This document shows, in pieces, positions 1-19,826 of a DNA stretch of 64,000 nt. This DNA is from Paraphysomonas bandaiensis. Lineage: Eukaryota > Protista > Chrysophyceae. The DNA lies in NCBI GenBank assembly GCA_965644295.1, contig CBFFRP010000164.1, positions 119,742-183,741 on the forward strand, read 5' to 3'. The notes under the pieces are model-generated. The model did no database searches. It was not told the origin of the DNA and saw only the letters and a program-made list of their open reading frames with translations. Position 1 is the stretch's first letter. Every line of letters begins with the position of its first letter. The position numbers and the translations under genes were made by a program.

Positions 1-3000
1 GACTCTTCCCGACTTGGAGATTTCACATCGTAATCACTACGGAACTCTGTGAAATTTTCAACTGGAGTGGACTGGCCGATACACCCGAAAAAAAGGGACC
101 CGCTAGACTCCTGGCGAACCGGCGATGACTCAGTATATGTGGTCTCACGGGCCACTGAACTAAACCAACTCACAAGCTCGTGGTCACCATTCTTGGACGC
201 GATAGATAGTCCTGTGTAGCCGTACTCGTCCCTGGCGTTGGGATTGGCGCCAACACCAAACAGATATTTGCACATTTCAATGCGACCCTTGAAAGCAGCA
301 TAATGAAGAGGTGTGCGCTTGACATCAGACTCCGCATTCACCCTAGCACCACCCATCACAAGAAATTGAGCTAGTTCTATGTGACCCGATGCGGCGACAT
401 AGTGAAGCGGGGTAGTGCCATAAGGAAGTTGGACGGAGTCTGAGTAACTGTTTATCATCCTCTCCAAAATTCGTTTGGCGTCGGAAAAATTATTCGAGCT
501 TAGAGCTTCCTCCAGGCATTCAACATTGACACCAAGCTCATTTCCAGTACTGCCAAACTTGCTAAGATAGTGCTCAACAGCAGGTTTTCCAGCAGCTCGG
601 GAAAAATCACTTGGAGATGCACCTTTCTCATTCAAAGCACAGGGATCAAGGTGCAAGTCTTCCACCAACCACTGCACGAGGTCAACATTACCATTTTGGG
701 CTGCCAAGTGCACAGGGGTGTTAAGCTTATCGTAACTGCCCCCAGTAACGTGATAATTGGCCCCTGCACTTACTAGCCACTGTGCTACTTCCAAATGCCC
801 ACCACAACAAGCATACATAAATGCTGTCTTCCCATTTTTATCAGCATGATTAACTGAAGATCCTTTCGAGAACAAATACTGGACGACACTTAAGTGTCCC
901 TCTGCACATGCCAAATGAAAGCCTGTGACGCCATTCTTATCACATGCATTTATATCAGCACCTGCAACCACAAGAGCCATTAACGTCTCCATTTGCCCGG
1001 CATGTGCTGCTTCCATGAGGGCAGTGGTATCATACTGCCCCTTTACTTCCTTGTCAACCTCATCGCGCATGAGCCACATCACTATATTTACGTGACCATT
1101 AACTGCAGCGAGGTGGAGAGGAGGTGTAGCAAGATCTCCAGACTCAGAGAAATGGAGAGAGAAGTCGATACACTTCAAACTGTGGAGCCAAGTACAGATG
1201 TCAATATGTCCAGCAATACAGGCGCAATCTAGTGGGGCAACCCCAGCCGCATTTAGATGATTCGGATTCGCACCCCGCTCATACAACGCTTTCGCGACAT
1301 CAACATTGCCATTCATACAGACGAAGTGCATAGCAGTGGACTTGTTTTCGTTTTCGACATTGGGATCAACACCTAGCTCATCCACATAATGGATTACATC
1401 TTCCACTGTATTACATGACTTCAGAAACTCGGCTGCAAGCTCGGGTGCCACTGGGACACCTCGCGGACGATAGGCTCGGTCAGGTAGGGTGTTGTCACCT
1501 GGTAGAGACTTTTCAGGCGAATCACTAGTTAAAGATGTGCTCTCCTTCACTTCATCACTACCAGCATTCTCCTCTGATTCCGAAGGCAAAGTTTCTTGCT
1601 CTACGATATCCTTGGAGACTGGTTCTGTATTTAACTCTTGCGGAATAAATTTCGGGGGACCCCTTACAAAAGGTACATTTGAGGTATGAACAGCAAATGA
1701 CATGTCGAATCCATTCTTAAAGGTACTACTGTAAAGTTTCCAAAATTTTTCAGCACAAGAAACAGCAGGGCTTAGTTCATCAAGCTCTTTATCGACAAGA
1801 ATTAGGCGTGTAATAGACTTCGGCTGTTCAAGGGCAAAGGCTTCTAGTATGGCCTCACATATATCGTCCCAAGATGAGTTCAACAATACATGCACTGTGG
1901 CACGTGTCTTAGAGCTATTGGCCAGTAGAAGAGGGATGTGTTCCGCGGCGGCCATGAAGGCGGCGTGGGCTTGATCTTTTCTTGTCTTTTCAATGGCATC
2001 TGCACTAAGAAACACATGGTATATTTTCGGGTCATCAAAGTTATATGTTCCTGCTACTTTCCAGAACAAAGTTGTGTTATCGATAGGCTTCGACAAAACA
2101 TCGCCCTCACAATCATAAAGTACAATATAATCCACCCATTTCGGATCATCCAATGAAAATGTAGTGGTGATTGTGTCCACGATATCGTGCCACAGGCAGT
2201 TTGGAGCAACCATTAAATCACCTTCCGTAGAGACCCCTGTTTCAGGGTTCCGCACGCACACCTTGAATTGTCGAGCGGATTTTCGAAACTCCTCTTCAGC
2301 TTTTGCTTTACTTGCAGCATTTATTTTTTCCTCGTTCAGCTTGACCACAAACACCATCGATTCCTCAATGCGATACATCGGGAGTACACCCCAAAATTTA
2401 TCCGCAGTGTCGAGGGCAGGACTCAGTTGGTCACCGTCCACATCATACAACACAATGTGATCGATCCACTCAGGCTCAACCTCTCTCTTACTGAGTGATT
2501 CGGCGATAGATTGTGCTATATGCTCCCAAGATCCACCCGAGTGAATAAGTGTTTCGTCGGGCTTGTCCTCTACAGAAAGGGATACATGAATCAGCGACAT
2601 GGACTGCTTCAATGCCATTTCCGCTCTCTTCTTAACGACAATAGTACGGTAGGAGTGATTCACATGGACTTCAAACAATGAACCATTAGATATATCAAGG
2701 TTAGTGGCAAATTTCCAAAACATTTTTGATGTGCTGATGGGAACACTTAAGTCAAGACCATTTGAGTCCACGAGCTTTAAGTGGTCCACAAACTCTTCTT
2801 CTATACTTCCAGCAGATGAGATGGCCGCTAGAATCTCTGACCATCCGCAGTGAAGACTAACACTGATTTCAAAAGGATCGCATGCCGTGTCTGTATTATC
2901 ACAAATTCTACAGTGGAAGGTACGTTTCGATGCGAGCTCAGCTGCTAACCTCTCCTCCTCTCGCGCTTTCTCCACTTGTTGCTGTTTTACTCTCTCCGCT

Positions 3001-5060
3001 ATTACGCGTGCCATCATGGCTTCGTCTTCATGCACAACAAAAGACGATGTGCCACCATGTTTCTTGTAAAATCGCCAGAACTTCTCTGCTGTCATAATGG
3101 CGGGGCTGAGCACATCACCGTCCTCACTATCCACAAGAACCATATGAGACACCCATTCTGCAGAGTCCAGCACGAGGGCATCGGCAGTGCGCTGGCATAT
3201 ATCATCCCAAGAACTATCGGGTAGTACATGCACTAACCCTTTCCTACTGGGATCTGCGTTCCAGCGAACAGTGAAGGGGCATGCATTGGCCATGAAAGCC
3301 TCCTCTTCAACAATACGATTGGCGTCTGGCTTCAAGTGAATATATATCGTCATATCGTCGTCGTCGCTAAGCTTATTTCCCAGCTTCCAGAACTTGGCAG
3401 CAGTATTTAGTGGGGGACTTAAGGGATCCCCTTCGCCATCTAGGAGAATGAAGTAGTCAATCCACGATGCCTCAGACAGGCCCATGAAGGATGCAACACC
3501 GGAGGTGAGGTCCTCCCAGTTGCAGTCATGAGGAACATATATATCGGTAGCTTGGCCATTTCGGTTGGTCGCCATACATACCTTGAAATGCTTCGCTGAC
3601 GCGCGAAAAGCAGCATCTGCAAGCTCTTCTTCGTATTTCCTTATCAGCCGTTGCTCCAAGAACACGTAGAAAGTCATTCCTGCTTCGGGGTCATATGTGT
3701 TCATGACCTTCCAAAATATGAGATCCCCATCAATAGGGGGAGAGAGATCGTCTCCATCAGAGTCCACAAGCACCAAACGAGAGATCCATTCCTCACGCTT
3801 CACGCATTCAGGGACTGCCAATGCGATGTGATGTCTGATGTCTCCCCAGGAGGCACCCCGCGGGATCAATGCGAATTCCTTTGATGACGAATAGGGCATA
3901 TCCTCGGGCGCCTGCACCTGTACGCAAACCTTTTGGCATGTCGCCAAAAAGGCTTCTCTCTCCCTGCATTTCTTATCTTCCTGGATACGCTCATGGTCTA
4001 AAGAGAACACAAACACGTCCCCATTGTGAGTAGAAGCTGACCGACCAAATCGCCAGAACTTTTCAGCAGTGTTGAGTGGAGGACTTATCTCATCGCCATC
4101 AGCGTCCTCCACTATGATATGTTTAATCCACTGCGGTTCCACATTAACAAATTCTTCTGCAATTGCAGTACTTATTTCCTCCCACGTGCAGCTGCGGGGA
4201 ATATACACGTGCCGCTCCTCCCCATTGTCTGCGCTTCGTACAAAAAGTCGGAGAGCGAGAGCGCGGAATTCTTCTAAGGCCTTTGCCTTGGCATGCTTTT
4301 CTTCCTCCACTACATCTACCACTACGCTAAAAGCCATACCTTCCTCGTAGTTGGCCCATATCTTAAAGAACTTGCTAGCATTGGTAATATGAGGACTTAA
4401 TACATCGCCTGCTGAGTCAATAAGGACCAGGGTCTTCACAGATGTGTGTGCAAACAACTTTAAACGCTTCGCAATAGCCTCTGTGAGAACATCCCAACTG
4501 GCGTTGGCAGGAACCCACACATCCAGATGTTGGAAGGTGGTGTCATTAGACATAACAATAGAAAATATTAAGTGGCCGGGTGGAATATCAAAGCCGTTAC
4601 TCTTCTGGACATTATCAACAACTGCATCAACGTCACCGACGTCGCCATTGGAGGCCTGATTACCACAATAGACTGTGTCAGATAATGAGTGTATCGGCTC
4701 CTCAATATTAGAAGATGCATAATAACTATCCTCGCAGCCAACAGAGGGAACTAAATCATTGCTATCAATGGAAGCTGGAGTGGCCGGCTTGACCACATGC
4801 GATCCCTCTGGGGGTCGATTTGAAAGATTCAATTCTTTCTGTAATGTATCACTTAATTCATTTTCATCCTTTAAAGTGACTCTATCACGTGATTCTTTTT
4901 TTTCCATACTAACAGAAGGGCTCGTATTTTTATCAGGTCTCAGTGATGGTTTGAGTGGACTGCTTTCTCGTGGTTTCCATGTCTGTTTTGATTTAGCGCC
5001 GATTTCTAACCTCGCTTGTTCAACAGCTTTACGAATTGCTTCACTTTTATCTTGAGGCAT
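1..5060 (-). CDS. Large protein with nine tandem ~100-aa PB1/ubiquitin-like repeats followed by C-terminal ankyrin repeats (3' end runs off the window)
   Basis: Minus-strand frame open from ATG at 5060 (MPQDKSEAIRKAVEQARLEIGAK...) toward the window edge. It is absent from the ORF track, presumably because no stop falls inside the window. Ankyrin motifs lie in ~150-1400 (KSTAMHFVCMNG, GVTGFHLACAEGHL, TTPLHYVAASGH, KRTPLHYAAFKG). A repeated SW..I...I and D.DGD.LSP...FWK motif occupies ~1700-4550. Confidence 0.85.
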   Translation of the reverse strand, partial: MPQDKSEAIRKAVEQARLEIGAKSKQTWKPRESSPLKPSLRPDKNTSPSVSMEKKESRDRVTLKDENELSDTLQKELNLSNRPPEGSHVVKPATPASIDSNDLVPSVGCEDSYYASSNIEEPIHSLSDTVYCGNQASNGDVGDVDAVVDNVQKSNGFDIPPGHLIFSIVMSNDTTFQHLDVWVPANASWDVLTEAIAKRLKLFAHTSVKTLVLIDSAGDVLSPHITNASKFFKIWANYEEGMAFSVVVDVVEEEKHAKAKALEEFRALALRLFVRSADNGEERHVYIPRSCTWEEISTAIAEEFVNVEPQWIKHIIVEDADGDEISPPLNTAEKFWRFGRSASTHNGDVFVFSLDHERIQEDKKCREREAFLATCQKVCVQVQAPEDMPYSSSKEFALIPRGASWGDIRHHIALAVPECVKREEWISRLVLVDSDGDDLSPPIDGDLIFWKVMNTYDPEAGMTFYVFLEQRLIRKYEEELADAAFRASAKHFKVCMATNRNGQATDIYVPHDCNWEDLTSGVASFMGLSEASWIDYFILLDGEGDPLSPPLNTAAKFWKLGNKLSDDDDMTIYIHLKPDANRIVEEEAFMANACPFTVRWNADPSRKGLVHVLPDSSWDDICQRTADALVLDSAEWVSHMVLVDSEDGDVLSPAIMTAEKFWRFYKKHGGTSSFVVHEDEAMMARVIAERVKQQQVEKAREEERLAAELASKRTFHCRICDNTDTACDPFEISVSLHCGWSEILAAISSAGSIEEEFVDHLKLVDSNGLDLSVPISTSKMFWKFATNLDISNGSLFEVHVNHSYRTIVVKKRAEMALKQSMSLIHVSLSVEDKPDETLIHSGGSWEHIAQSIAESLSKREVEPEWIDHIVLYDVDGDQLSPALDTADKFWGVLPMYRIEESMVFVVKLNEEKINAASKAKAEEEFRKSARQFKVCVRNPETGVSTEGDLMVAPNCLWHDIVDTITTTFSLDDPKWVDYIVLYDCEGDVLSKPIDNTTLFWKVAGTYNFDDPKIYHVFLSADAIEKTRKDQAHAAFMAAAEHIPLLLANSSKTRATVHVLLNSSWDDICEAILEAFALEQPKSITRLILVDKELDELSPAVSCAEKFWKLYSSTFKNGFDMSFAVHTSNVPFVRGPPKFIPQELNTEPVSKDIVEQETLPSESEENAGSDEVKESTSLTSDSPEKSLPGDNTLPDRAYRPRGVPVAPELAAEFLKSCNTVEDVIHYVDELGVDPNVENENKSTAMHFVCMNGNVDVAKALYERGANPNHLNAAGVAPLDCACIAGHIDICTWLHSLKCIDFSLHFSESGDLATPPLHLAAVNGHVNIVMWLMRDEVDKEVKGQYDTTALMEAAHAGQMETLMALVVAGADINACDKNGVTGFHLACAEGHLSVVQYLFSKGSSVNHADKNGKTAFMYACCGGHLEVAQWLVSAGANYHVTGGSYDKLNTPVHLAAQNGNVDLVQWLVEDLHLDPCALNEKGASPSDFSRAAGKPAVEHYLSKFGSTGNELGVNVECLEEALSSNNFSDAKRILERMINSYSDSVQLPYGTTPLHYVAASGHIELAQFLVMGGARVNAESDVKRTPLHYAAFKGRIEMCKYLFGVGANPNARDEYGYTGLSIASKNGDHELVSWFSSVARETTYTESSPVRQESSGSLFFGCIGQSTPVENFTEFRSDYDVKSPSREE

Positions 5061-5273
5061 GATGATCCCTAGTATCTTCTATGGGATAAAGTGCTTTACA
5101 TATACCTTCAGCTGATTGAGGATGAAGTGAGTATTATCTTTTCTTTAGAGTTGCATATTTACCACGAGATTTGCATTCAGGTACGAAGTACCCAGCCACA
5201 AAAAAATTGAAATTTAGATTGAAATTTTCACTCTTTTTTTACAATCCACATCGTCTGTTGACGATGACGTTAG

Positions 5274-5396
5274 TAGGGTAAAAAAGTAGGGGGTTTTCTA
5301 CATTTTCTACCCACTTTTTACCATAGTGTAGACAGTATATTGCCAAAAACAGCAGCCATTTCCTACATTTTTTTACTCATTTTATTTTTTACCCTA
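5274..5396. mobile_element. Putative MITE with 12-bp terminal inverted repeats
   Basis: TAGGGTAAAAAA at 5274 and TTTTTTACCCTA ending at 5396, with internal CTACATTTT repeats. No target-site duplication is visible. Confidence 0.4.
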
Positions 5397-5665
5397 GCCA
5401 AAAAAGAAAAGGGGGATACAACTGGCACATAAAAAGACTGATGGAGAGTACGAGGAGTACAGCGATTTTTTATGGTATGTCATGTGTGATTACGGGGAGT
5501 GTTGTGGTTTGCTTGATATTTGGTGCAAAGAGTTATAAGCAATAACTAAATAAGCAATAAAGTCATTTAGAAGTGGTAAGCTTTGCTCTTCTATTTGCCC
5601 TAATTAGTCATTTCAAATCGAACTACTCAGTAAAACAGAACCTGTTTATTTTGTTAAGAGACAGT

Positions 5666-6024
5666 ATGGCATCTTATAGTGATTTGGATGGAGTCTTGCC
5701 TCCTGAGAAGCCCAAAATGAAAGTTTCGTGGGAAACGATGAAGGAAAATCACGTTCCTCTCCACCTCCGCGACTTTTGCGCCCATGATTTGATCCCATTA
5801 AATGAGTATGCAATTCTTACAGGTTGTTTTATGTCTAATTCTCCTGATATAGATGTCGACGGAAAGAAGGACCATGGCCCTGGACTTGCCATCACGAGAA
5901 ACATGCATATGAAGTGTGCCAGTACGAACAATACATGTACAGGAAAGCACTCAAAGAATATCTTGTAAAATCTGGACAGTGGAACAAAGGTCGTTTTCCT
6001 GATCCGGCGCCTGTATCAAAGTAG
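5666..6024 (+). CDS. NDUFB7: NADH:ubiquinone oxidoreductase B18 subunit, 2 exons
   Basis: MASYSD...VPLHLRDFCAHDLIPLNE joined through a GT-AG intron (5806-5852) to CRRKEGPWPWTCHHEKHAYEVCQYEQYMYR. This gives the twin CX9C-type B18 signature. Stop TAG at 6022-6024. Confidence 0.92.
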
Positions 6025-7029
6025 TTTGCCCACGGCAGTATTGGCTTGCTCATATTTATTGTTTTCCTGTCGTTCTCGATAACTGTGTCCTCATTGTAGC
6101 TAATGACAATAAAAAATCGTATTATTAATCTAATTTGGATGCCATATAAATTTGGTTGTGGGTCTCTTCCGTTTTGGAAGAGAGAACGTTAGTGTACACC
6201 AGACGAATCCACTCTCCTAAGTATCATACTGCTACTTAACTTAATCTGCTGATATGTATTTCTGGGCTTGTGTCTTGTTGTACAATAATCAGTTATCCCC
6301 GTTTTGTCTCAAGAAAAGCTTCTTTTTTGACCTGATTTTGTCTCAACAGGGGCTCATAGCTAGCACTGGGCAAATATAGACATTCAACTTCAATATTCGG
6401 CTCAACAGAAGCTCACTTCTATCCTAAGTATGATAATGACAGTCATATGTATGTGATTTCATTATAGTCCACACAATTATACAGAAACCACAATCATGAG
6501 TTAAACCATTAGACACTCCAAGTTATATTCCATCCTTCGACTGTTGTATAAGGTATAAGATATAAGATCACAACGATGCCAGCAGTGCAAGTGATCTGTC
6601 TTCATATCCAGGACTTCGAAGCAACTTCAAGAACATTACAGGAGAGTTTAAGTACCGTATATGATGCTATATAGGTGGTTAGGATCAGTGGCACCCAGTT
6701 CTTTCAGGTTTGAGCCATATCGTGCTTCTCATGATATTCTTGTGTACCTCATATCATACACATATCATTCGATCAGGTGCACTTGCAGAGGTGAAGCCTG
6801 CTGTATATAAATGTGATGATGATGCTAATCAAGGGAATAAGAAGCCTCTCTTTTACCTTTAACTGTTCTGTTCACATTCATCATCACACTTACAGTATAC
6901 ATATCATTGATTTGAAACTATATGACCGTTAAGGGCTATCTCCTTGCGGCTCATAAGGATGACGATAGCAGTGGCGATGATGAAACGGGGGAAACAGGAG
7001 GATTTGCTGTGGATATATAGAGAGAAGCT

Positions 7030-7532
7030 GTGGCAAAAAAGGCAAAGAACAGCAGGAGAGCCACTAAATATCGCTCCATGAATCATTTGGTGACGACTTC
7101 CAATATTGTTGAGCGATTATTTAGCAGAGCAAAACTTATTATGAGAGACCAGCGCAAGCTAATGGAAACCCAACATTTGGAGCTGCTACTCTTTTTGCGC
7201 TGCAACAAATTCTTATGGAACGAAGTTACCATTGATGATATTATAGTTGCTGATGATGTTTAAGAATATTGTTCGCATTAGCTATCTGACCTGACTGTAA
7301 CATGGGAACGAACTGCTCATCATTGCTGTTAAATAGCTAGTACTTAGTCTAATTATTAACACTTTCCATTTACTTCTTTCTAAAGCAATAAAGCAATAGT
7401 AATCAAACCATAAATGGTCCATTAATGGCCATTAATGGTCATAAAAATGGTGGGATTTTTAAAATTAATGGCCATAAAAATGGGGGAAGCAATGCGTCGC
7501 CATTAATGGCCTTTAATGGTTACGCAAGCCTG
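7030..7532 (+). mobile_element. hAT-like DNA transposon 3' remnant (C-terminal dimerisation domain plus right end)
   Basis: TSNIVERLFSRAKLIMRDQRKLMETQHLELLLFLRCNKFLW matches the hATC-type motif. It is followed by CCATTAATGG subterminal repeats and an end (GGTTACGCAAGCCTG) resembling the TIR of the MITE at 16712. Confidence 0.75.
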
Positions 7533-9456
7533 GCTTTGATGAATAAACAGCATTCTTAGGACTGAATAGTAGGATATCAGAGTTAATTGCAGACTTGGAA
7601 ACGTCTATTGCTAATAAAATAAGACATTCACTTTGATAACCTTGACACTATAGGGTATACCAGTACAGAAAGAGCTATGGAGATATCTAGATTAAAGGCA
7701 TTTTAATGTTTATGAAAGACTGAATCACAGTATTGGCAATAACGCAGTGAAATCTATTTTTCACAGCTGCCAACCCAACATTCGTTAATACGGACTGGGG
7801 TGGGTGTAGCAGGTGCAGGAGTTTATCATCAATCAGCACATCACGAAACTAGTGACCCTTGTCGTGACATATGACCGAATAAGGTAGAAAACAATTGTGA
7901 TAACTGCGGCCAATTCCAGGAAGCTTGGTCACCATGTTATTTGGAAAACTCTAACTTCTCTTCATGCCTTCTCAGCTAATGTGCCATCTTTGGCAGTATA
8001 TATCATTAGTTGGCTTGTAGCAAAGGAACAAATATCAATTGTGTTGTATTTAGACTGAATAATCGTTAGAAACCCAACCTCTGCTTTGATCGACACAACC
8101 GTAACTGATTCTAAAATAGGTCTCAAGTAGTGTTCATGGCTCCCCATCCATGGATATATTCCAATTACCACCCTTGTACTACCAAACATCACCAGTATTC
8201 TTGTCATTGGCCATATCCACGGGTATACAGACACCTATATGGCCAGTTTCTCCCTCCCATGCAACTACCTCATCTTCTTTGATCGTGTTTAGTTGAACCA
8301 TTACTTCACAATGAGAACTGCGCTCTTTTCAATACTTAGCATCGGTATATCGTCCAACATAAAGGTTACTGTCGATGATGATAAAATACCGAGCGCGATA
8401 CTGAATCGAAAATTCAAGTCATGCAAGCGAAGACGCACGAACCTCTCAAGTTTAACTGGTGTTCTTTTCAATGCCTCCATATTTCATCAAAAGGGAGGCG
8501 GCAAGAAGCGTATATTTGTCAAAAGATATGTCATACGTGGTACACAGTTAACACTGCACCCAAAGGTCCATCATCAGAGACATAGAGGACACCCTGGTCA
8601 ACTAGGTTGTTTACGACATAACTAGATTTATGTTGCCCTATTCCGCCAATACATCTTCTACTTTATTCTTATAAGGTGGAAGGGTATGCATACACAGTCC
8701 GTGGGTTCGCCTTCCACACAGAAATAGCAGCAGCCATTAGATTCGCGACGTAGTAATGAACAAAGCGTCCAATTCCACCAGTGGATATTCGCATCGCACA
8801 GATCTCAGAGTGTGCACATTCCTGGAGTGGGTGTGCAGGAGCATAATACCGCTGAGATAGGGAGGAATAGAGGATCGTGACCGCCTGGAACGAAATTGAA
8901 GTCGAATAGGACCCGCTGTAGAAAAGAGAAGACATTATGCAGCTCTTCTAATGATTGCTATATATATATAAGTACAATTAAGTAGTTTGGCTATCGTATT
9001 ACGGATCAACGGGGCAGCATGATATTGAAGTGTCGGACTGAATGTGTATTTTTGGGTAAATGAGCCTAAAATCCTAAAAACACACAGTTTTCCTATAAAA
9101 GGGGGAGTTTTCATGTCACAATATTATGGGTAGGAATCGTATGTTTATTGGTTTTGGACCGTACTTCAACACAATCGAAGACCAAATATTCTACCAACAC
9201 TCAAAACTACAGAACTGTTATGAGTTTTTACGTAATTTCCCATATTGAAAAAATAACATTGTAAACTAACTACAGTATAGAGTTTTCAAGAGAATCAGGT
9301 AGCTATTATGGAATAGTGGACATAATAAGTATGTTGACACGCTTCATTAGTCAGCGCGTCTCATAGTATTAAGACAGCATGCGATGCATTGCTTATCTTT
9401 CGATGCAGTAAGCTAATATTAGTGATACACTGTATTGTCAGTGGTAGTGAGTAGTT

Positions 9457-12400
9457 ATGCCACAGGAAAAGAAAGTCCCTTGTGAGGAATCACCCTCTAT
9501 AAGTACGAGTATTGAAGAGCTATTTTCAGATAAAGGAGTGTTCGGGTCGGTTGAGTTTCCTCCTGTTAACTCGACAAAGGAATTAAACTGGGTTACAGTT
9601 GGTGCTCTTCAAGCGATTGCTTGTATTGGAATAATTGTCTTTCAATATGTTCAAGGATCATATCACATTGTCAACTCAGTTGTGATATGTATTGCGCTTG
9701 TATTGGTTCCAGGTATTGAACTTCTTGCAAACTTTACTGAGCCCTCGAATTTAAAATCGACTATCACGGCGTTTGTGTTGGTGATGTTTGTCGACTTTGT
9801 AGTCGCATACATGTCGTGGACATCTACCTTCTCGACACTCTATATATCCTTATTCATTGTATTTAGACTTTTTATTAACGGGCTTGCGGCAACTAATTTC
9901 CTTGTCATTATTCTCTATCTTAATTGGTCCTGTAATAGAGGGTCGCTGTCACATGTCGATGTAGTTTTGGTGTGTTCGATGTTTGCCGTCGCGTTTGTAT
10001 TAAGTCAATTTCTCCGTCGGTCTCGAAAACGGTATGTGTACAAATTGTTTTTTTTTTTCATTTTCATTATACTGTGGGCAGGTTCAAGGAAAATATTCGA
10101 TACTTGCTTCGCTTGAGGAGAAAGATTGTTTTGGAGAAACACTTCACAAATATACTTGTATCAAGCTCTCTAGGCTGGAGACACTGCTCAGATGGTGCCA
10201 GCTTTGATGACACCCCCGCGAGTCGAATTGAGACCCTTTTCGGGGGACAAACTACGGAAGGGGGTTTTGGAGTCTCGGTTGGTGCAGATACAGAAAGAAA
10301 GTCATCAGAAGGACCTCGACGACGCACGAATCGCCTCGTCGACTCGTGTTTATCGAAAGAGATTCTCTCCTCTCGAGGCAAACCGATGGGAACTGTTCAG
10401 ACTATGATGCACTTCAGGAACGTATGTAGAAAGGTGTGCACTCTCATTGCCATCCGGCCGCTGCTAGCGGGATTTGGTGAGTGCCAGGTGGAGGACTCTT
10501 TGCAGAGTAAGCGTATATGGAGGCTTCTGCATCGGATTGCTGAGCACCATAAAGTCACACTCGTTCGCAAGTTTGGTGACGTATGGGTGGGATGTATTGG
10601 TTTTTTTGAGGAGTGTTGGGACTCAAAGGAAGTAAACGCTATCCACGCTGTGCAAATGGCCTGTGACGTTCTAAACTCTTCTGAACAGCTAGACATTGCA
10701 TTCACATGTGCTATAGATCATGGTAGAGTTGTTGGTGGTTTTGTCAACGGGATATTTACTTTCGATGTGTTTGGTCCGGAGATTCTGTGGGTGCTGTCTG
10801 TGTGTGAGGCTTGCAGCAAGCGTAAAATAATCGTCAGTCGTAGCACTAGGTCTCTTATTAACAAGAATTCTCTCGAGAAGTCGTTCTCGTATGAGCCTTG
10901 CGCAGTGCTTCTTCCCGATGGACGGGACCCAGAGAGAGCATGGGCGGTGGTGAAAGTAGCGAATGAGGCAAAATGTTCGATTGCGTGTAACTCATCGTCA
11001 TATTCTTCGTCTCCTCGAGAGGGTGAGGATAGCAATGTGCTTCCATGGTTTATGATTGAGCACGTATTCGATAGTGACCTGGCATACAACGGGGGCAACC
11101 TTGGCACCTGGACTTCCGATGATACATCACCCGCCGCGCAAAGCTTGGCGATGGAGCTTCAGTATGTTCCGGCCTGTATTCGCTCCATTATTGCCGCAAT
11201 AACAGCTGCGAGCCCAAATGTGAATCTTGATCACGAGACAAGTGGGCGCCGAATCTCTGGGTCAGATTGTCTAGATCCAGCACGGACTGATGCACAGAAA
11301 GCGCAGGAGGAGGGTATAGTGAGGGCTCTTCATCACTTAATGCTTACAAGGGTGCTACCGGATACTTTGCTGCTTTTTTATTTACCAGATTACTTGATAT
11401 CTTCTAAATCAAAGTCGCCGGTTCGTTGTGATAAAAATGAAAGTCTCTCCAGTCTTCCAGGGAAAACTGCCGAAGAATCTGATATCGACTATGTGGTGAA
11501 TAACTCTTTCCCTCCCCCGCTTCATTATGAATACAACAGAGTAAAAGCCTTTATTCACTTTCTCCGAACTGATTTTGTTGTTATTGTAAGGCAGTATGTC
11601 TTGAATATAACAACTTTTTTGTACTCGAGACGCAAAGGACGGAAGTCGCTTGATTCCCGACGCGTGTATTGCTATGAAGAAGAGAACTCAGATGTTAATC
11701 GGGAAGGTGATTCCTTCGTCGATAACAGAGGCTTAAATCCAGAAAATGACTTGCCTCCTCAGGAAAGTACTTTCCCCACAACAGGTTATGGAAATAGTAT
11801 GGAAATGAATCCAATAAAGTCCTCGTGTTCAAGAGATGAACCCATAATTGATTCCTCGGATATATTTCGGCCGTCGCAGGACTGGGAAGAGTTTCACCGG
11901 TCCTGCCATTCCGCTCATTACCGATTTTTGGATGTGGTTATGTGCATTGCATTATCCGCAGTTAGTATATATGTCTGTGTAGATCATGACAATAGTCTCG
12001 ATTTCTCGAATGAGATAACTTTGTGCGCTCACTTGATAGCACCTGCGGCTACGATTTGGTCGACACTTGTTTTTGAGAAGCGTGAATACCCTGTGGCTAT
12101 ATATATCATGGTGAGTTGTTTCCATTTAAAAAATCATAATTCATTGGTATTGCTTGCAGATGACTCTGCTCCGAGTAGTGGCAATTAATTTCTTCCCGGT
12201 GTCAGGGAAAGACTCTGCCACGAAACTTCTCGTTTATTTCTTAGGATGGATATACTTTAGCTTTAATCAACGAGTGAAGTACTTTATGTTTGATGTTATC
12301 GTCATTGCTCTTCAACTTCAACATATGAGTGGAGTGCATGACACTGCAGTGCTAGGTGGTTCCGACGTAATCGGTATTTTGCTGGGGTTGTTCTTCTTTG

Positions 12401-15351
12401 TCGTATGTTTTGTTATCGCGGAATATTACACTTTTTTGTGCTATATAGTCGATCATATTCTCGTTCCCTACGAAAAGGAAGTCTATGAGGCCGAAAGGGA
12501 AGTTGCGTTGACTGTCTGCGGCGGCTACCTTCCACACACTAAGACCGGTATATCGAGGGACCTTCTTGCCCCTCGTTGTTATCGCAACTGTGCTGTCTTG
12601 GCCTTTCATATAAAGGCCGCGGAAAGTATTCCTGCGGTCGCTGATGTCCCTGACGTTGCATCGTTAATCGATTATCTCTACAAGTTCATGGACGGCTGTG
12701 TGAAAAAATTTGGATTTCTAAGTAATTTTGGCTGAGTTTTAACTTCTGCATATCTAAAATTGTGTTTACAGGCGTCTGTCATTTCTCTGGTATTCATATA
12801 TCTGCAATATGCGAAGATGAAGAGTTCAAAAAGCTTGTATCTTCCTCGAAATCATCTGTGTCTTCCGCACCTTATATTCCCCGAGCTGTAGCGTGTGTTC
12901 GATATATGCAGAAGACATTGATGGAGTTCAATACCCAGAATAGTATGAATATCACATTGGGTGTCAGTTTGAGTCATGGAAACGCCTTGATTGGGTTGAA
13001 TGGTAGTGTCTGTAATGCCTGCTTTGATATCTGCGGTAGAGCACGTGACCAGGCATTTTATATGTGTGCCCGCCAAACCAACAGGGTAGTCATATCTTCC
13101 GCCTACATAGAAGAGATTAAGCGACTTCGCCATGTTTCTGAGGCATTGTATTATCCGGTTGACTCGAAGCTGCCTTTTTTTCAGGGTTGCCAGCAATGGT
13201 ACACTCTTCAACTGCACGGTGGATACTTTGGGGCATGCTCCAGAGAGCTTAAGGACTACTTATATATAGGGTTCTTGGGCGAAGGGGGTAATGGATCTGT
13301 ACACCTGCTGCGAGACAAGATAAACAGGGTTCAAGTAGCTGTGAAGGGTATACGATGGAGCATGGGAAGGACTTCTAGTATACACCACATCAGACGGGAA
13401 CTAATCATCTTGCAACAACTTCAACATCCTAACATCGTAAACTTCAAATTCTGTATCATTAAGCGCGCGAAGATATATATAGTTATGGAGTACATTAGAG
13501 GCGGTACACTGAGGCAGATTGTTGAAGAGCATAAGCCCAATTTACACGACTTACGGGTCTGGTTTGCTCAGCTGGTGCTTGCTCTCGGGTATCTTCACCA
13601 CCAGGGAATTATGCACCGCGACGTCAAGCCGAGCAATTGCATGATTGATACTTTCGGCCACTTGAAGCTGACGGACTTCGGGCTAGCCATCAAGGATGAT
13701 GATATGACAAGTGGTGGTAGCTGGAGCGCTGTCGCGGATACGAACCATGAGAGCACCCACCCTCATCCCTGTCAGGACGAACACACTGTGGTGCGCATGA
13801 AGTTTTATTACCTTTACCTTTGTCAACGTTTTTCTTCAGGGAGGCGCCTTAAGTCGGTCCACTCAATCTTTAATGCAGAATATATTCCCTATACGAGAAA
13901 ATCTGGATTTGGATAGGAAAATTAAACATAATGAAAGTATTTTGGTTGTAGATAGCGTAAAAGCAAGGCTGCGCCGAAACGTGAAGCTGTTAAAGCAAGG
14001 ATTTACGGTCTGGCAGGCCAATAACGACGATGAGGCCATGGACTTGCTGTACCACAGGGAAACGCACAAGGTTGATCTAATAATACTAGATCTTGACACC
14101 AGCGATGACAGAACCGGAGGGTGGGGCTTTTTATCAGTGCTCTGGGAGCACAGCGAGTGGAGGCATATTCCTGTGGTAGTAATGACTGTGTCTCATGACT
14201 TGGACTTCTCGTCGCCGTGCTGGGAGGTAAGCACTCTTTGTGGGGTCGCTATTTTTTCCTGATGTTGTTTCTGCATATACAGAAGCGATTGCCGGATATC
14301 AAAGTTCGTCCGAAACAAATTTTGTCGCATCCATTAAATTACGAAGCAACGAAGTAAGAAGGAAATGTTTAATGTGAATTGATATAAGTGCTGTTGTAGG
14401 AATTACTTCGAAATGCTCTGTCGGCTAGAGTCGTCCTGGGGTGCACAGCAAACCCCCAGTAAAGGCACCAATAGCTCATCAAATAAATTGCGAGTCCTTC
14501 GTGGCTCCGTCTTTGACAACAGATTCGATGAAGTGTACCGTAAATATCATCATGATCATGCTTATTGTGATGAGACATCATCCCCACCTCAAAATAAAGC
14601 TCGAAGGCGTCTCAATATAAGAGGTTACGGGCTGGTTGGCACTGTACAGTATATGGCACCTGAAATGCTTGCACGGGAACCGTATGATGAGTCCGTAGAC
14701 TGGTGGTCCTGCGGTGTTCTTTTCTTCGAGTGTGTTATGCGTAGAAGGCTCTTTGATGGTTTTGGAAATACCCTTTTAGCTCAAGATATTTTGCATTGCA
14801 ACATAGAAAATCGACTAGAATCATTTCGGCAGCTTCCAGCTTCCCTAAAGGATCTTTTACTCCACATGTTGGATAGAGATATTAACAATAGGTACGATGA
14901 GCAGCTCATAAAGGAGCATTCATTTTTCAACGACCCTGAGACTCCTGTTGAGCCCTATGTTGTGGGGAAGCAGTACGAGCCCATTGGGTTTGTTGGGAAG
15001 GGCAAGCGTCCTGTAGTGGAAAAGTCATGCGACGGATCTCTACCGGGAAGCGCATCTTTCGATGACCTTGTCAGTTTCTCGTCTCAGTTCAAACCTCAAC
15101 CAGTAGCTCTTAATATAGTGAGCGATGAATTGCGGGAGCGTCAAAAGAAAGAATTTTTCAACTCAGGTAGCTTATCAGATTCCTCACGGAACATTAAACC
15201 GAAGCCGAAGGAAGGAAGTAGCAAGGGAAAGAAAGGGAAAGATTCGAATACGTCATACTTGCCTAAGGTTTTGGAAGATAGGGAGAATTCGAATAGCGGA
15301 GATGACGTATCACTCGATGATCGTGAAAATGAAACTACATCTGCGTGGTGA
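9457..15351 (+). CDS. Multidomain membrane protein: TM block - class III cyclase-like domain - TM block - second cyclase-like domain - AGC Ser/Thr kinase interrupted by a receiver (REC) domain; 7 exons
   Basis: Six frame-preserving GT-AG introns (10032-10081, 12111-12159, 12722-12771, 13791-13839, 14227-14282, 14354-14399) join the track ORFs at 9457, 9972, 12154, 12762, 13873 and 14413. Kinase motifs: GEGGNG, VAVK, HRDVKPSN, DFG, GTVQYMAPE, DWWSCG. Cyclase-like motifs: KFGDVWVG, HGRVVGGF, FDVFG. REC motifs: ILVVD, DLIILD, IPVVVMT. Confidence 0.82.
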
Positions 15352-16177
15352 GTAGTAATGTTTGAAATTATTTGCAATATATTATTTTTTTATTGGCGGT
15401 TCAGTAGTTGATATCTACATATATCATACTGTATATTGATCGAATGAATTCCAATTTGATTTGTTTCTGAACTACGCTTTATGTCGCAAGTACTAATTTT
15501 ATAAAGTCATTGTACCAGTAGACGTTGATCATGTTTTAAAATAACGTTATTTCCATTGTATTGACGCAGTTCTGATTTTATTCTGCCAATTATTTCTATA
15601 TGTACTTGCCCCTACGCCCCTACACTGTGTAAAAAGAGACCACCAATAGCCAGTGGTATGTATAGCTATATTTGTAAGATATGCAATTAAGAGCTGTATT
15701 TTAAGTATATGAAGTATGACCGTTACTTAAAGAATACTGTAGTAGTGCATGTGAGTACTGATTACTAGCAATAGGCGTGTAAAATTAGAACTAATGTGGC
15801 AAAACGATTTAACTAACTAGTGCTATTGTAAGGCAATAGCAAGCCACAAGTTGATAGTAGCGATAGTGTTATTAACTTGTTTTATCAGGGTTATCTGTGA
15901 TAATAATGACGAGCATTCCAATCTGTCTTCTATCACAGACTACACCTACAGCTCACACCTTGGACATATATATGCCCTTACTCTACACCAATCCACTGTA
16001 CATATTGGACTGTACATATCCTACACCGTATTGTCATCATACACCGTATAACGGTATACCGTTATCCTACTGTATACTGTAGCTGGCTGTCTTCACTACA
16101 CTGTATATATCCTGTATACTACCAAGCCAAGCTCACATTCCAACGACAGTCAATCTCCTATACGGGGATGACAACAA

Positions 16178-16503
16178 GTGCTTAACTATGATATCCTACT
16201 ATTTAGCGCTACGAAAGCTGCTTGTGCGTCACCGCAAACCAAGGTGCAACCACTTTCGCTCTATCACTCAAAGCAAACGCAGTAAGCAAGCAGAATGTTG
16301 ATATTTGATATATACCTGACATCTGCTGACTTCAGGATTTTTGAGTTCTTAGGGTAAACTGCCCGGATGCTTGACTTCAGCAGGCAGCCCAATACCCAAT
16401 ACCCAATACCCCTGTTACCCTTGAGGTGGGCCCTGTCCCGAAAATCTCTCCGGTACTTATCCCCCAGAGCATCACGAAAAGATGAGTCCGACTTTGTTGA
16501 GGG
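16178..16503 (-). repeat. Dispersed repeat family R1, copy A (opposite orientation to the other copies; a separated terminal fragment lies at ~15762-15824)
   Basis: Its reverse complement matches 32061-32370/33235-33460, 39178-39910, 57081-57425 and 58262-58652 (e.g. GGGCTGCCTGCTGAAGTCAAGCATCCGG, CCTGAAGTCAGCAGATGTCAGGTATA, ATTCTGCTTGCTTACTGCGTTTGCTTTGAGTGATAGAGCGAAAG). Confidence 0.9.
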
Positions 16504-16711
16504 TAGAATCTTGAGATATACAGCTTACGTGACAAAGAAATATTTGAGACACTTTAGATATCAACCTAGAATCAGGTCAAGTATGCTTTTGGTTAAACGT
16601 TAAATTCAAATGCATTACTTCAGGAGACTTTACGAAGTTAAGCTTATAGTTTTGTATCAGAATCTTTTCTTTTCTTCCAGGAATTTTGGGAATCTCCCTG
16701 GTGATATATTT

Positions 16712-16833
16712 CAGGGCCTGGTAACCGTTAATGGTAATGCCATTGTAATTGCCGGGACATTTTTCATTAATGCCATTATAATTGCTGGGAACTGGACTAC
16801 CATTAATGGGCCATTAATGGTTACCAGGCCCTG
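16712..16833. mobile_element. 122-bp hAT-type MITE with intact TIRs and 8-bp TSD
   Basis: TIR CAGGGCCTGGTAACC ... GGTTACCAGGCCCTG, flanked by identical ATATATTT at 16704-16711 and 16834-16841. Its internal CCATTAATGG motifs are shared with the hAT end at ~7410-7532. Confidence 0.9.
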
Positions 16834-17128
16834 ATATATTTACTACTCTGTTGAGTTTTTCCGTTCGAAAGCATGACTTTTGAGATATTTAGATAATGCC
16901 AATCATAGTAGTGAAACTGAAGTATATTCACAGATTGACAGTATAAGATGATAAGATCGTGTCTATAAAAGAACATATGGAAATGATAAGATAAGATATG
17001 TAGTTAAGATAACCTGAATTTGGTAAATGCCAATGAATGATAAGTATTAGGATTCAGTTTAATACATGATTGTTTCTGTGAGTTATAATGTTCAATGAAA
17101 TATATCATGAACTGAATTAGAGAGTATC

Positions 17129-17275
17129 TGTCGAAGATACATGATTGTCATCATAACGTCGTCATTATCAGTTACACTTCTTACTACTCCGTTGTGCATG
17201 ATAGTTATGTTCTATATTATTATTCATAATTTTCACTCTATCGTGTTCATTACTTATACTCTAATAATCACAACA
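17129..17275 (+). repeat. ~145-bp TG...CA repeat (LTR-like), copy 1; copy 2 at 21260-21399
   Basis: Both copies start AGTATC|TGT(C/T)GAAGATAC, share CGTCATT..CAGTTA, TCCGTTGTG and GTGTTCAT, and end ATCACAACA. Confidence 0.55.
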
Positions 17276-17538
17276 TTGTTTTACTATTATAAAGATCAAT
17301 TCTTTGTTATAAGTGATATCGATCGTAATTTATAATACCAGCATTGTGTATACTACGTTCTGTTATTTAAGTCTTATCACCTAAAAATGTCAAATCCTGA
17401 CACGCCCATTGTAAGCACACGCATCACATGACTGGATATAAACTTCTATTACTATCAAGTGTAAAATGAAATAACTATGGATGACACACAGCTACATGGT
17501 TATTTAATAAAGTGCAAATGTTCAAATTTTAAAAATAT

Positions 17539-19826
17539 TCACAACTTCTTTTTCTTTGCACCTTTCTTCTTTGATACATCTTGCTTCTTAATTGGCTTGA
17601 TAGGTGGAAGGGCCTTTATTGTTATGTCGCTCCCAATCAATAACCTTCCAAAATCTGTTCGCATCGGAATACTCTCCCTCACACTCTGGCTATTGACAAT
17701 GGTTTGGCTTCGTTTAGCTTTTTCACAGTTCTTAGATGCAACTACTGATCGAGGATGACGAGAACCAAGGCTTTCGCAGAATACATCTCGTGCCCGTTCA
17801 AAGAGCACCCTTGCTGCGCCTCTGCGACTGAGGCTATACAAGCAACATGCCTGATTGTTCCAAGCTGTCGCGGTATCTGCACTACGGAAACCGTATTCCA
17901 TTTCTCGGAATCGTCCGACTTTGGTAAAACATTTTAGTGCTAGTTCATAATGCAAATTATAGTATGCTAAAAGACCGACTGAGTTAATGAAAACTGTTTC
18001 CCAATCTCCATGTAACTCCGTAGTAGCAATCTCCCATCCCAATATATAATGCAGGAGTGACTGCTCATCGTCGCCGCAACTTTGATACACATTGCCTTTG
18101 CAGGCTAATATATAAAACTTTGATTCCGCTGGTAGAACGATTTCACTGTCATCAACCTCAATCGCTGCAGGAAATACAGGAGGCGCTGGGGATGCAACAG
18201 GTGATGACGAGGCTGGAGGTGGATCAGTTCCGTCTGCGGGTTTTTCAGTCGTAGAGACGCAACTCTTTCGGCGATCTTGCTTCTTTCTCGCTATTATCTT
18301 CATTCGCTCACTCTCTATGAGCTGCATCTTCGCAGTTTCAAGGTACTTTAAGGCTTCTTCAAAACTGCCAAGATTGTGGTGAGCAAGAGCCGCCTCCAAA
18401 GACTACAGCATAAAATAAACATTAGACTCTGATAAAAAATAGTCACTGTCACATACATGCTGTACATGTGAAGGGCAACTAAGTGGTAGTGGGACAGTGT
18501 CTCCTATTACAACAGGCTTGTTTATTTGCTTCGCCCGCCGTTCCACAGACTCGTCTCCATCTGTAGGAAATTGCTCGAGGTAGGTTTCGATACCATCAAT
18601 GTCAGCCATGCTATCAACACGAGCAACCACCTCATCAAAAAGCTTTTCCATTCGTATTATTATCGCCTCTCTATTGTTATTCGACTGACGAGAGTATAAG
18701 TCATCCGGTTTTTTGCTTGCAGGAAGCACGACAGTGCCTGGCTCTTCAAAGGAAGAGGCTACTTTCTTCAGCTCACGCGAAACGGTGGTGGCACTGGGCT
18801 GTTGCACACACACCGTATCACCCACTGTGGGATGAGCAGATACAGCAGTGTTGATTCCAATAGTCTGGAGAAGATCCGTTAGAATCTTATGCAGCGGAGG
18901 GGGGGGGCTTTCTAAGGAAGTAGTAATCTGCCGTGAAAGACCTCGTCCGAAAGCCACCACTGGCTTGTCCCCAGATGTGGCAGTCATAGAAACAGTGTCC
19001 ACCACAACAACTGCAGTGAAACAAAGAAGCAACTGAAACTGGAAACATAGTACCCTCAGTACCGCTATACAGTTAAGCAGAATGAGCATAGAGTACCTGC
19101 GGATAAAGAAGTGTAGAGCTAAGAGTCAGAGAAGATTTCAGCAAGGGGTGGCGCTCCAAAACGTCGCGGGCAAGTGACGTACATTGCTTATAATAAAAAC
19201 ACAGTTACTGAACTGTAAATGCAGTCAATCTATTGTTACCTGTAGTGTCAAGTGTGTCGGAATTAAAGAAACAGCTCCAGCGAATGAGATAAATCCTTCT
19301 ATCTAGAAAAACAGTAGCGCATTATATGCGTATACATAGTTAGGTCATTTCTTCTGCTCACATCCATTCCAACTTCCATTCTTTTGACTTCATCCCATGT
19401 TAATCCGCCCCCAACTTTGACACCTCTTCCAGCGAATGCACTGAATAATCTTCGCAATGGGATATCATACTTTAACAGCACCCTGATTACATGTGTGTCC
19501 ATAGCTTGGGTGAAAGTAGAATTATCACAGTTGTACTTCAAAGATCGCGCATTGATAAGATCTTCAACAAGCTTATCTAAGTGATTTTCATCATCAGGAT
19601 ACTTCACTCCGGAGAGGTTGTCAAGAAAAGTGGTGAATACAGTAAAATCTAAATGGTCTAGGCCTTTAGAATTAGCCACTGTAAATGCGCCAGAGAGGTC
19701 ACATAGAGTAAGATTATTGTCCAATACTGGCCAAAAATTCTTTGCTATTTCAGGGAAATGCACTACACTGTTGGTTCCTAGAGTGCACAGGGCAAATATT
19801 TCCTCCAACTTCTCTTGAATGCTCAT
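17539..19826 (-). CDS. Multi-exon protein with an N-terminal p25alpha/TPPP-like helical region and C-terminal TPR repeats
   Basis: Co-directional ORFs 19299-19826, 18403-19089 and 17539-18399 are separated by short intron-like gaps. TPR-type segments: AALAHHNLGSFEEALKYLETA, KGNVYQSCGDDEQSL, TATAWNNQACCLYSL...LGSRHP. N-terminal AFTVANSKGLDHLDFTVFTTFLDNLSGVKYP resembles p25alpha. Internal exon borders are not fully resolved. Confidence 0.7.

Follow-up and report, generated by a model that had tools for sequence, protein, structure and literature searches.

Membrane adenylyl cyclases such as animal AC1-AC9 and Dictyostelium ACA share one layout, in which six transmembrane (TM) helices, a first cyclase domain (C1), six more TM helices and a second cyclase domain (C2) follow one another, and both domains have the class III cyclase fold. 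The purpose of the twelve membrane helices is still debated. To our knowledge, activity in class III cyclases always depends on a pair of metal-binding Asp residues and on a transition-state Asn and Arg. We analyzed a stretch of 64,000 nucleotides (nt) from the chrysophyte Paraphysomonas bandaiensis (assembly GCA_965644295.1, contig CBFFRP010000164.1, positions 119,742 to 183,741; the window), in which a gene at positions 9457 to 15351 encodes a protein with this same layout and fold. Unlike AC1-AC9 and ACA, it has neither the catalytic Asp pair nor the Asn/Arg pair in C1 and C2, and it adds a Ser/Thr kinase with a receiver-like insert and a long linker of about 330 amino acids (aa) between C1 and the second TM block. 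On balance, we read the protein as a membrane-anchored Ser/Thr kinase with a 12-TM adenylyl-cyclase chassis, that is, as a probable pseudo-cyclase receptor kinase.

Receptor guanylyl cyclases of the GC-A type also combine a kinase fold and a cyclase fold in one membrane protein, one of the two being a presumably regulatory pseudo-enzyme. Those proteins are single-pass, and a dead kinase precedes a live cyclase; in the 12-TM window protein, cyclase domains that are dead by prediction precede a kinase predicted to be live. It is not a receptor guanylyl cyclase itself, given its reversed order, two TM blocks, degenerate cyclase domains and intact-looking kinase. In appearance the protein is closest to an animal-type membrane adenylyl cyclase, and in presumed mode of action to these receptors. 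It would, by analogy, mirror them in function and provide a clear example of pseudo-enzyme role reversal.

Other proteins share some of these features. Fusions of Pkinase and Guanylate_cyc in one protein occur in bacterial clusters of the ESM Atlas; these are proteins of about 690 aa that lack a 12-TM part and in which one cyclase domain follows the kinase (a sub-threshold lead, with a feature similarity of 0.87). In the AGC kinases Rim15 and Greatwall (MASTL), DFG and APE are likewise separated by a large insert; both proteins are soluble and lack a cyclase-like part. Rim15 is reported to possess a receiver domain as well (PMC8510515). In Rim15, as is generally known, the receiver comes after the kinase, whereas that of the window protein lies inside the insert. 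The P4-ATPase-guanylyl cyclases of alveolates and stramenopiles are likewise multi-pass protist proteins with C1-TM-C2 fused to another enzyme, but that partner is an N-terminal flippase, the cyclase is active and there is no kinase (PMC13466520). Dictyostelium ACR (PMC3009899) and the algal two-component cyclase opsins resemble the window protein in having membrane segments, a receiver and a class III cyclase domain; they have a histidine kinase and an active cyclase as output, whereas the window protein has a degenerate cyclase part and, as presumed output, a Ser/Thr kinase.

An earlier note on this stretch had not recognized the architecture. It does look unusual: we found no description of TM-C1-TM-C2-kinase in the searchable full-text literature, kinome studies included, where only a minority of subscription journals is covered. 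All the parts belong to known families, and the combination and the reversal of roles appear to be new.

A single gene and its relatives

The cyclase-like part and the kinase are encoded by a single gene, in one frame and on one transcript. Six open reading frames (ORFs) in successive, shifting frames span 9457-15351 on the + strand and are joined once intervals bounded by GT and AG are removed. The resulting gene runs from an ATG at 9457 to a stop at 15349-15351 in seven exons and six introns of 46 to 56 nt, and an in-frame TGA at 9448-9450 closes the reading frame upstream of the ATG. Its spliced coding sequence of 5,595 nt consists of 1,864 codons and a sole, terminal stop, giving a product of 1,864 aa.

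As evidence of splicing, we used contigs from four public sequencing runs aligned to the window. For one of these, X3, the RNA nature is a guess only; another, X5, is a polyA marine metatranscriptome. Contigs from X3 skip introns 1-4, those from X5, which are at least 99% identical to the window, skip introns 4-6, and overlapping RNA-type contigs tile 9458-14869. They place the donor of intron 4 at 13791 rather than at 13788, an alternative that would also stay in frame, so that the product gains one Val. The six short, frame-preserving introns of a single gene that the earlier note had proposed are thus confirmed by one open frame and by RNA-derived contigs across all six junctions, three of them in polyA material. 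Expression of the gene in the sea follows from the polyA metatranscriptome contigs, which match at 99% identity or more. At two positions, 9674 (A>G, X3) and 14760 (T>C, X5), the RNA-type contigs differ from the window by a single base, most simply read as strain variation. Alternative frames of exon 6 that, judged by eye, resemble a receiver more closely were rejected, since the splice sites they require are non-canonical and the canonical sites are the ones seen in RNA.

Within exon 4 (12772-13790), one uninterrupted frame (ORF 12762-13916) covers both the second half of C2 and the N-lobe of the kinase, so the fusion is independent of any splice. A wrong merger of two neighboring genes, one for a cyclase-like membrane protein and one for a kinase, is barely credible. 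Such an artefact would fit the fact that no single RNA contig as long as the gene was seen, the last ~380 nt having no contig at all, but C2 and the kinase N-lobe lie in one stop-free exon, every junction is seen in RNA, and at least 20 relatives, many of them on transcript-sized contigs, have the same order in one protein.

In the product, about six TM segments are followed by C1, the ~330-aa linker, six TM segments, C2 and the Ser/Thr kinase. Pfam, hydropathy and profiles agree on this order, which the earlier note had given correctly; its list of domains left out the receiver-like domain within the activation segment of the kinase. TM block 1 aligns with the N-termini of four relatives (P0017, P0009, P0045 and P0046). 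Pfam gave nothing useful on TM block 2 and found no domain in the linker (aa ~471-800), and the equivalent part of the model of the relative P0003 has a predicted local distance difference test score (pLDDT) below 50.

The relatives come from an exhaustive HMMER search with exon 2, which yielded 63 cluster representatives. At least 20 of them are long (1.5-2.6 kaa) and show C1, then TM block 2, C2 and the kinase N-lobe, and then the C-lobe. Pfam assigned Pkinase to 20 of 22 long relatives, Guanylate_cyc to 13 of them and Response_reg to 2. A further homologue search with region 40-1060 of P0017 returned four proteins. One family member comes from the chrysophyte Mallomonas annulata (EukProt), the sole named eukaryote; the others are environmental. 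The architecture is thus found in at least 20 distinct clusters of protists, Mallomonas among them.

Cyclase fold and catalytic residues

C1 matches the Pfam family Guanylate_cyc (PF00211) with 25.9 bits, against a cut-off of 21.9, and C2 was not detected by Pfam in its two separate exon pieces. We built family profiles of C1 (A1, 42 sequences, the window first) and of C2 (A2, 21 sequences). Searched against the PDB, A1 finds class III cyclases (best E value 1.3e-8), and A2 finds AC9 (5.5e-15) and AC8 (6.5e-13); A2 also finds both C2 exon pieces of the window in the genome (1e-30 and 3e-14). The family profile is required, as a PDB search with the window C1 as a single sequence gave only a chance match to an antibody. 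An AlphaFold2 (AF2) model of the window C1, folded with A1, has a mean pLDDT of 86 and a predicted template modeling score (pTM) of 0.76. Its top 50 Foldseek matches in the PDB are all class III cyclase domains, and it superposes on CyaB (3r5g) with a root-mean-square deviation (rmsd) of 2.4 over 166 columns and on the C1 domain of AC5 (1cjk_A) with an rmsd of 2.9 over 160 columns. On this model, the window C1 can confidently be assigned the class III cyclase fold.

The fold of C2 and of the whole chassis was modeled, with the family alignment, on P0003, the closest relative, which is 40% identical to the window product over 1,169 columns. C1, six TM helices, C2 and the kinase N-lobe are all confident in this model. 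The six top-ranking Foldseek hits of this model are the full-length cyclases AC9 and AC5, aligned across about 1,000 columns, and the E values against full-length AC9, AC5 and AC8 go down to 6.8e-15. VIA-align against the same three proteins gave Z scores of 22-28, with 28 for AC9, and aligned residues 26-969 of P0003 with residues 305-1248 of AC9, with C1, TM7-12 and C2 in order; the six helices of the equivalent of TM block 2 correspond to TM7-12. As modeled, the layout of two TM blocks, C1 and C2 is that of membrane adenylyl cyclases. The comparison of TM-C1-TM-C2 with these enzymes in the earlier note is borne out by the fold searches; it had also said that N-terminal domains without a class III fold would speak against its proposal, and both the window C1 and P0003 model as class III.

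Canonical catalytic positions were mapped by hidden Markov model (HMM) alignments to RhGC, AC9 and AC8 and tabulated for the window and for the 21 C2 and 42 C1 sequences. In C2 of the window, His1018 stands in place of the first metal Asp (His in 15/21 of the family) and Gly1062 in place of the second (Gly in all 21). The transition-state Asn is Asp1148 (Asp in 17/21, Asn in 1/21), and the Arg is Tyr1152, with Arg in none of the 21. In C1, the first metal position is hydrophobic in the window, where aa 303-323 contain no acidic residue, and Ile, Phe or Val in the family; the second is Asp, D357, as in 18 of the 42. The position of the transition-state Asn holds Leu427 (Arg in 32/42) and that of the Arg holds Ser431, with variable residues in the family. 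No member has the Asp pair in either domain, and none has Asn and Arg on the partner domain, so both potential sites of a pseudo-dimer are degenerate. Judged by these residues, the window protein almost certainly does not synthesize cAMP or cGMP.

This result bears on the proposal of the earlier note that second-messenger-type input and kinase output are coupled within one polypeptide, which would have an active cyclase module make cAMP or cGMP beside its own kinase. The layout and fold do match those of real membrane cyclases, and C1 keeps one metal Asp. Both the Asp pair and the Asn/Arg pair are missing in C1 and in C2, and these losses hold in all 21 C2 and 42 C1 relatives. In addition, Pfam found no cyclic-nucleotide-binding domain in any piece of the window protein, and AGC catalytic domains are, as a matter of general knowledge, not receptors for cyclic nucleotides themselves. 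These findings do not support the proposal, and we consider an active cyclase highly improbable.

The residues that replace the catalytic ones are themselves conserved: the His, the invariant Gly and the Asp of C2, and in most members the Arg of C1. Conserved motifs are also present, WxGCxGFF and FDxFGxEVRW in C1 and AIHIKA and FSG in C2. Together, the conserved replacements and motifs point to a module that is under selection for something other than cyclization and that has retained a non-catalytic role. One such role would be that of a ligand sensor, in which the degenerate C1-C2 pocket binds a nucleotide or small molecule without turnover and controls the kinase in place of the membrane bundle. 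The forskolin site of animal cyclases is a case of a ligand bound without turnover, and real membrane cyclases are generally known to have one degenerate, ligand-binding pseudo-site already. The same conserved residues and C1 motifs argue for a retained pocket or interface. On the other side, this explanation predicts no ligand, and a dimer interface alone could equally account for the conservation. We think a ligand sensor of this kind unlikely, but it ranks first among the alternatives, ahead of a chassis that serves only as an anchor, an active cyclase and a gene-model artefact, in this order.

The kinase, its insert and a possible mechanism

The kinase begins about 40 residues after C2. 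Pfam recognizes Pkinase in two parts, one up to DFG in exon 4 and the other from APE on in exon 7. All catalytic motifs are kept in the spliced product (GEGGNG, VAVK, HRDVKPSN, DFG and GTVQYMAPE), and the kinase is intact-looking: complete by its motifs and predicted to be active.

For the C-lobe and tail, we compared a family profile (A5) with the PDB. Its top 60 matches are all AGC kinases (RSK, Akt, Cbk1, PKC, S6K, PKN or PKA), with E values down to 1.5e-31, and the alignments extend into the start of the AGC tail, HxFFxxIDW...P(F/Y)KP, which is found in relatives and shortened in the window. With the C-lobe of the window alone, Akt-like, PKC, PKA and RSK kinases rank first in the PDB; for the N-lobe the list is mixed. 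Pfam did not find the AGC C-terminal tail (PF00433) or the hydrophobic motif in the window or in the 22 relatives. These comparisons justify calling the kinase AGC-like at the level of the family; for the window gene itself, AGC-like denotes similarity to the AGC group, with full membership as a possibility. An intact-looking kinase after C2, with AGC character, had been noted earlier, and at the family level the complete motifs and the profile matches agree with it.

Between DFG and GTxxYMAPE, the kinase carries an insert of 268 aa; in relatives this insert has 238-430 aa, and 94 aa in one. Part of the window insert matches Response_reg (PF00072) with 28.5-28.8 bits against a cut-off of 30.2, the query being cut by intron 5. 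A relative, P0012, scores 32.5 bits, two of the 22 long relatives pass an E value of 0.001, and 8 out of 14 inserts show a recognizable receiver-like domain. Of the residues typical of a receiver, the window protein retains the phospho-acceptor Asp (D1479), the Thr and the first of the two acidic residues. A phosphorelay input to the window protein is possible from these residues, though not as a property of the whole family.

In the genome, we counted HisKA domains at 64 or more loci, receivers at 51 or more (110 candidates) and HPt domains at 2. This two-component repertoire is very large for a eukaryote, yet only 2 HPt matches are included.

Rather unlikely, in our judgment, is a chassis that is only a device for anchoring, targeting or dimerization, for example in the flagellar or plasma membrane, with the kinase controlled by a His-Asp phosphorelay through the receiver insert. 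The receiver-like domain does lie in the activation segment with its phospho-acceptor Asp kept, and histidine kinases are plentiful in the genome, alongside two HPt genes. The receiver, though, has no second acidic residue and no Lys, its Asp is Asn in 4/8 relatives, and it was detected in just 8/14 inserts; moreover, a mere anchor would have no need of the strong conservation that both cyclase-homology domains show.

In the pseudo-cyclase receptor kinase that we favor, C1 and C2 would still pair as a pseudo-dimer beneath the membrane, as they do in real cyclases, and this pseudo-dimer would act as a conformational relay or a ligand-binding regulator. A signal sensed by the TM bundle would pass through it to the kinase, the sole catalytic output. 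A prediction of the C1-C2 complex for P0003, folded without alignments, had a score of 0.01, which counts neither for nor against pairing. The receiver-like insert may provide a second input, as D1479 is kept and the HisKA, receiver and HPt loci of the genome could feed it. We suggest, quite tentatively, that the protein could represent a new class of receptor kinases, in which a pseudo-enzyme sensor on a cyclase chassis drives an AGC kinase and a receiver in the activation loop merges a His-Asp phosphorelay with the membrane signal.

Besides the lack of a gene-long contig, several points weigh against this picture. The models of C2 and of the whole chassis are those of P0003 and not of the window's own protein, and the multi-domain superposition of P0003 on AC9 has an rmsd of 12-14 Å, so it supports the domain order and folds and does not establish the relative packing of the domains. 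C1 retains its second Asp, D357, and C2 the Asp of a YDIWG-type motif; with these in place, C1 and C2 may still bind nucleotides to some extent. Pseudo-enzyme calls made from sequence have occasionally proved wrong. In the kinase, the window has Gly (YGLVGT) at the position of the AGC activation-loop Ser/Thr, where many relatives have Ser (HSAVGT). In the receiver, Ser replaces the second acidic residue and Arg the conserved Lys, and the phospho-acceptor Asp is Asn in P0017, P0067, P0068 and P0018, four of eight relatives, which makes a phosphorelay input doubtful for the family.

If a pseudo-cyclase receptor kinase is what this gene encodes, at least 20 divergent lineages of protists have long preserved this chassis beyond the loss of cyclase chemistry, with a kinase as sole output. 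Such long retention argues that the TM bundle and the C1-C2 dimer are a signaling device in their own right, and the protein offers a system for studying this chassis with phosphorylation as the read-out. An old enzyme chassis seems to have been reused as the scaffold of a receptor kinase.

Features, deposited relatives and genomic surroundings

The coordinates of all features within the window are collected in Table 1.

Table 1. Coding region, exons, introns and protein segments of the cyclase-kinase gene, with window positions and supporting evidence
Feature	Residues (aa)	Position (nt)	Strand	Evidence or remark
Whole coding region		9457..15351	+	Spliced translation; all 6 joints in RNA-type contigs
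Exons 1-7		9457-10031, 10082-12110, 12160-12721, 12772-13790, 13840-14226, 14283-14353, 14400-15351	+	One open frame when joined
TM block 1, 5-6 hydrophobic segments	~43-188	9583..10020	+	Hydropathy scan; aligns with N-termini of relatives
Intron 1, 50 nt, GT..AG		10032..10081	+	Absent from X3 contig
C1 cyclase-homology domain	~300-470	10404..10916	+	Pfam PF00211, profile A1, AF2 model, residue table
C1-TM2 linker	~471-800	10917..11906	+	Domain-free by Pfam
TM block 2, six helices, spans intron 2	~805-966	11919..12453	+	Hydropathy; P0003 model
Intron 2, 49 nt, GT..AG, within TM block 2		12111..12159	+	Absent from X3 record 6, shorter flank 255 nt
C2 cyclase-homology domain, spans intron 3	~1005-1180	12568..13145	+	Family profile A2, residue table
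Intron 3, 50 nt, GT..AG, interrupts C2		12722..12771	+	Absent from X3 contig
Kinase N-lobe and catalytic loop to DFG	~1215-1359	13248..13682	+	Pfam Pkinase 7e-37, profile positions 5-147
Insert of 268 aa between DFG and GTxxYMAPE, spans introns 4-6		13683..14637	+	Motif positions
Intron 4, 49 nt, GT..AG, in kinase insert		13791..13839	+	Absent from X3 and polyA X5 contigs
Receiver-like (CheY-fold) domain in insert	~1425-1547	13927..14353	+	Pfam PF00072
Intron 5, 56 nt, GT..AG, within receiver-like domain		14227..14282	+	Absent from X5 record 12
Intron 6, 46 nt, GT..AG		14354..14399	+	Absent from X5 record 12
Kinase C-lobe, GTVQYMAPE to HSFF		14638..14928	+	Pfam Pkinase 4e-17, profile positions 157-263
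C-terminal tail, Ser/Lys-rich		14929..15348	+	No Pfam match; poorly conserved in family alignment

The relative P0046 (NCBI RYH20361.1) is deposited as 'MAG: serine/threonine-protein kinase [archaeon]'. Metagenome contigs with relatives carry plainly eukaryotic genes (IFT122-like WD40, TTL, BART and Got1) with few introns. Because such genes lie on the sister contigs, the archaeal label is probably a binning error. On a metagenome contig of the Joint Genome Institute (JGI; L018, 10001-16545), a relative is called as two genes, one of 1,621 aa and, after a gap of 60 nt, a Pkinase of 539 aa. Since the two calls are separated inside the kinase insert, the likely cause is a short intron or a split made by the gene caller, on a eukaryotic contig that is poor in introns.

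The gene stands alone, without an obvious cluster. In the flanks (4600-9450 and 15352-17500), the sole ORF of at least 120 aa lies upstream, at 5573-5968, and a gene on the - strand lies about 2 kb downstream (17539-19826). Within its own 62.5-Mb genome, the gene is single copy: exon 2, exon 5 and profiles A1 and A2, used as queries, gave no paralogue there. Another 42 matches to cyclase domains occur in this genome. On the - strand of the window's own contig, some 70 kb upstream of the window (G000:C164:49227-50450), one ORF of 2,293 aa contains two Guanylate_cyc matches; by profiles A1 and A2, this gene is not a paralogue. Two other loci, L011 (G000:C123:7198-10437) and L012 (G000:C296:339972-343478), are ORFs of about 1,000 aa in which a P-loop NTPase-like region comes after two cyclase domains; in translations read by eye, they look like soluble adenylyl cyclase with a STAND-type tail.

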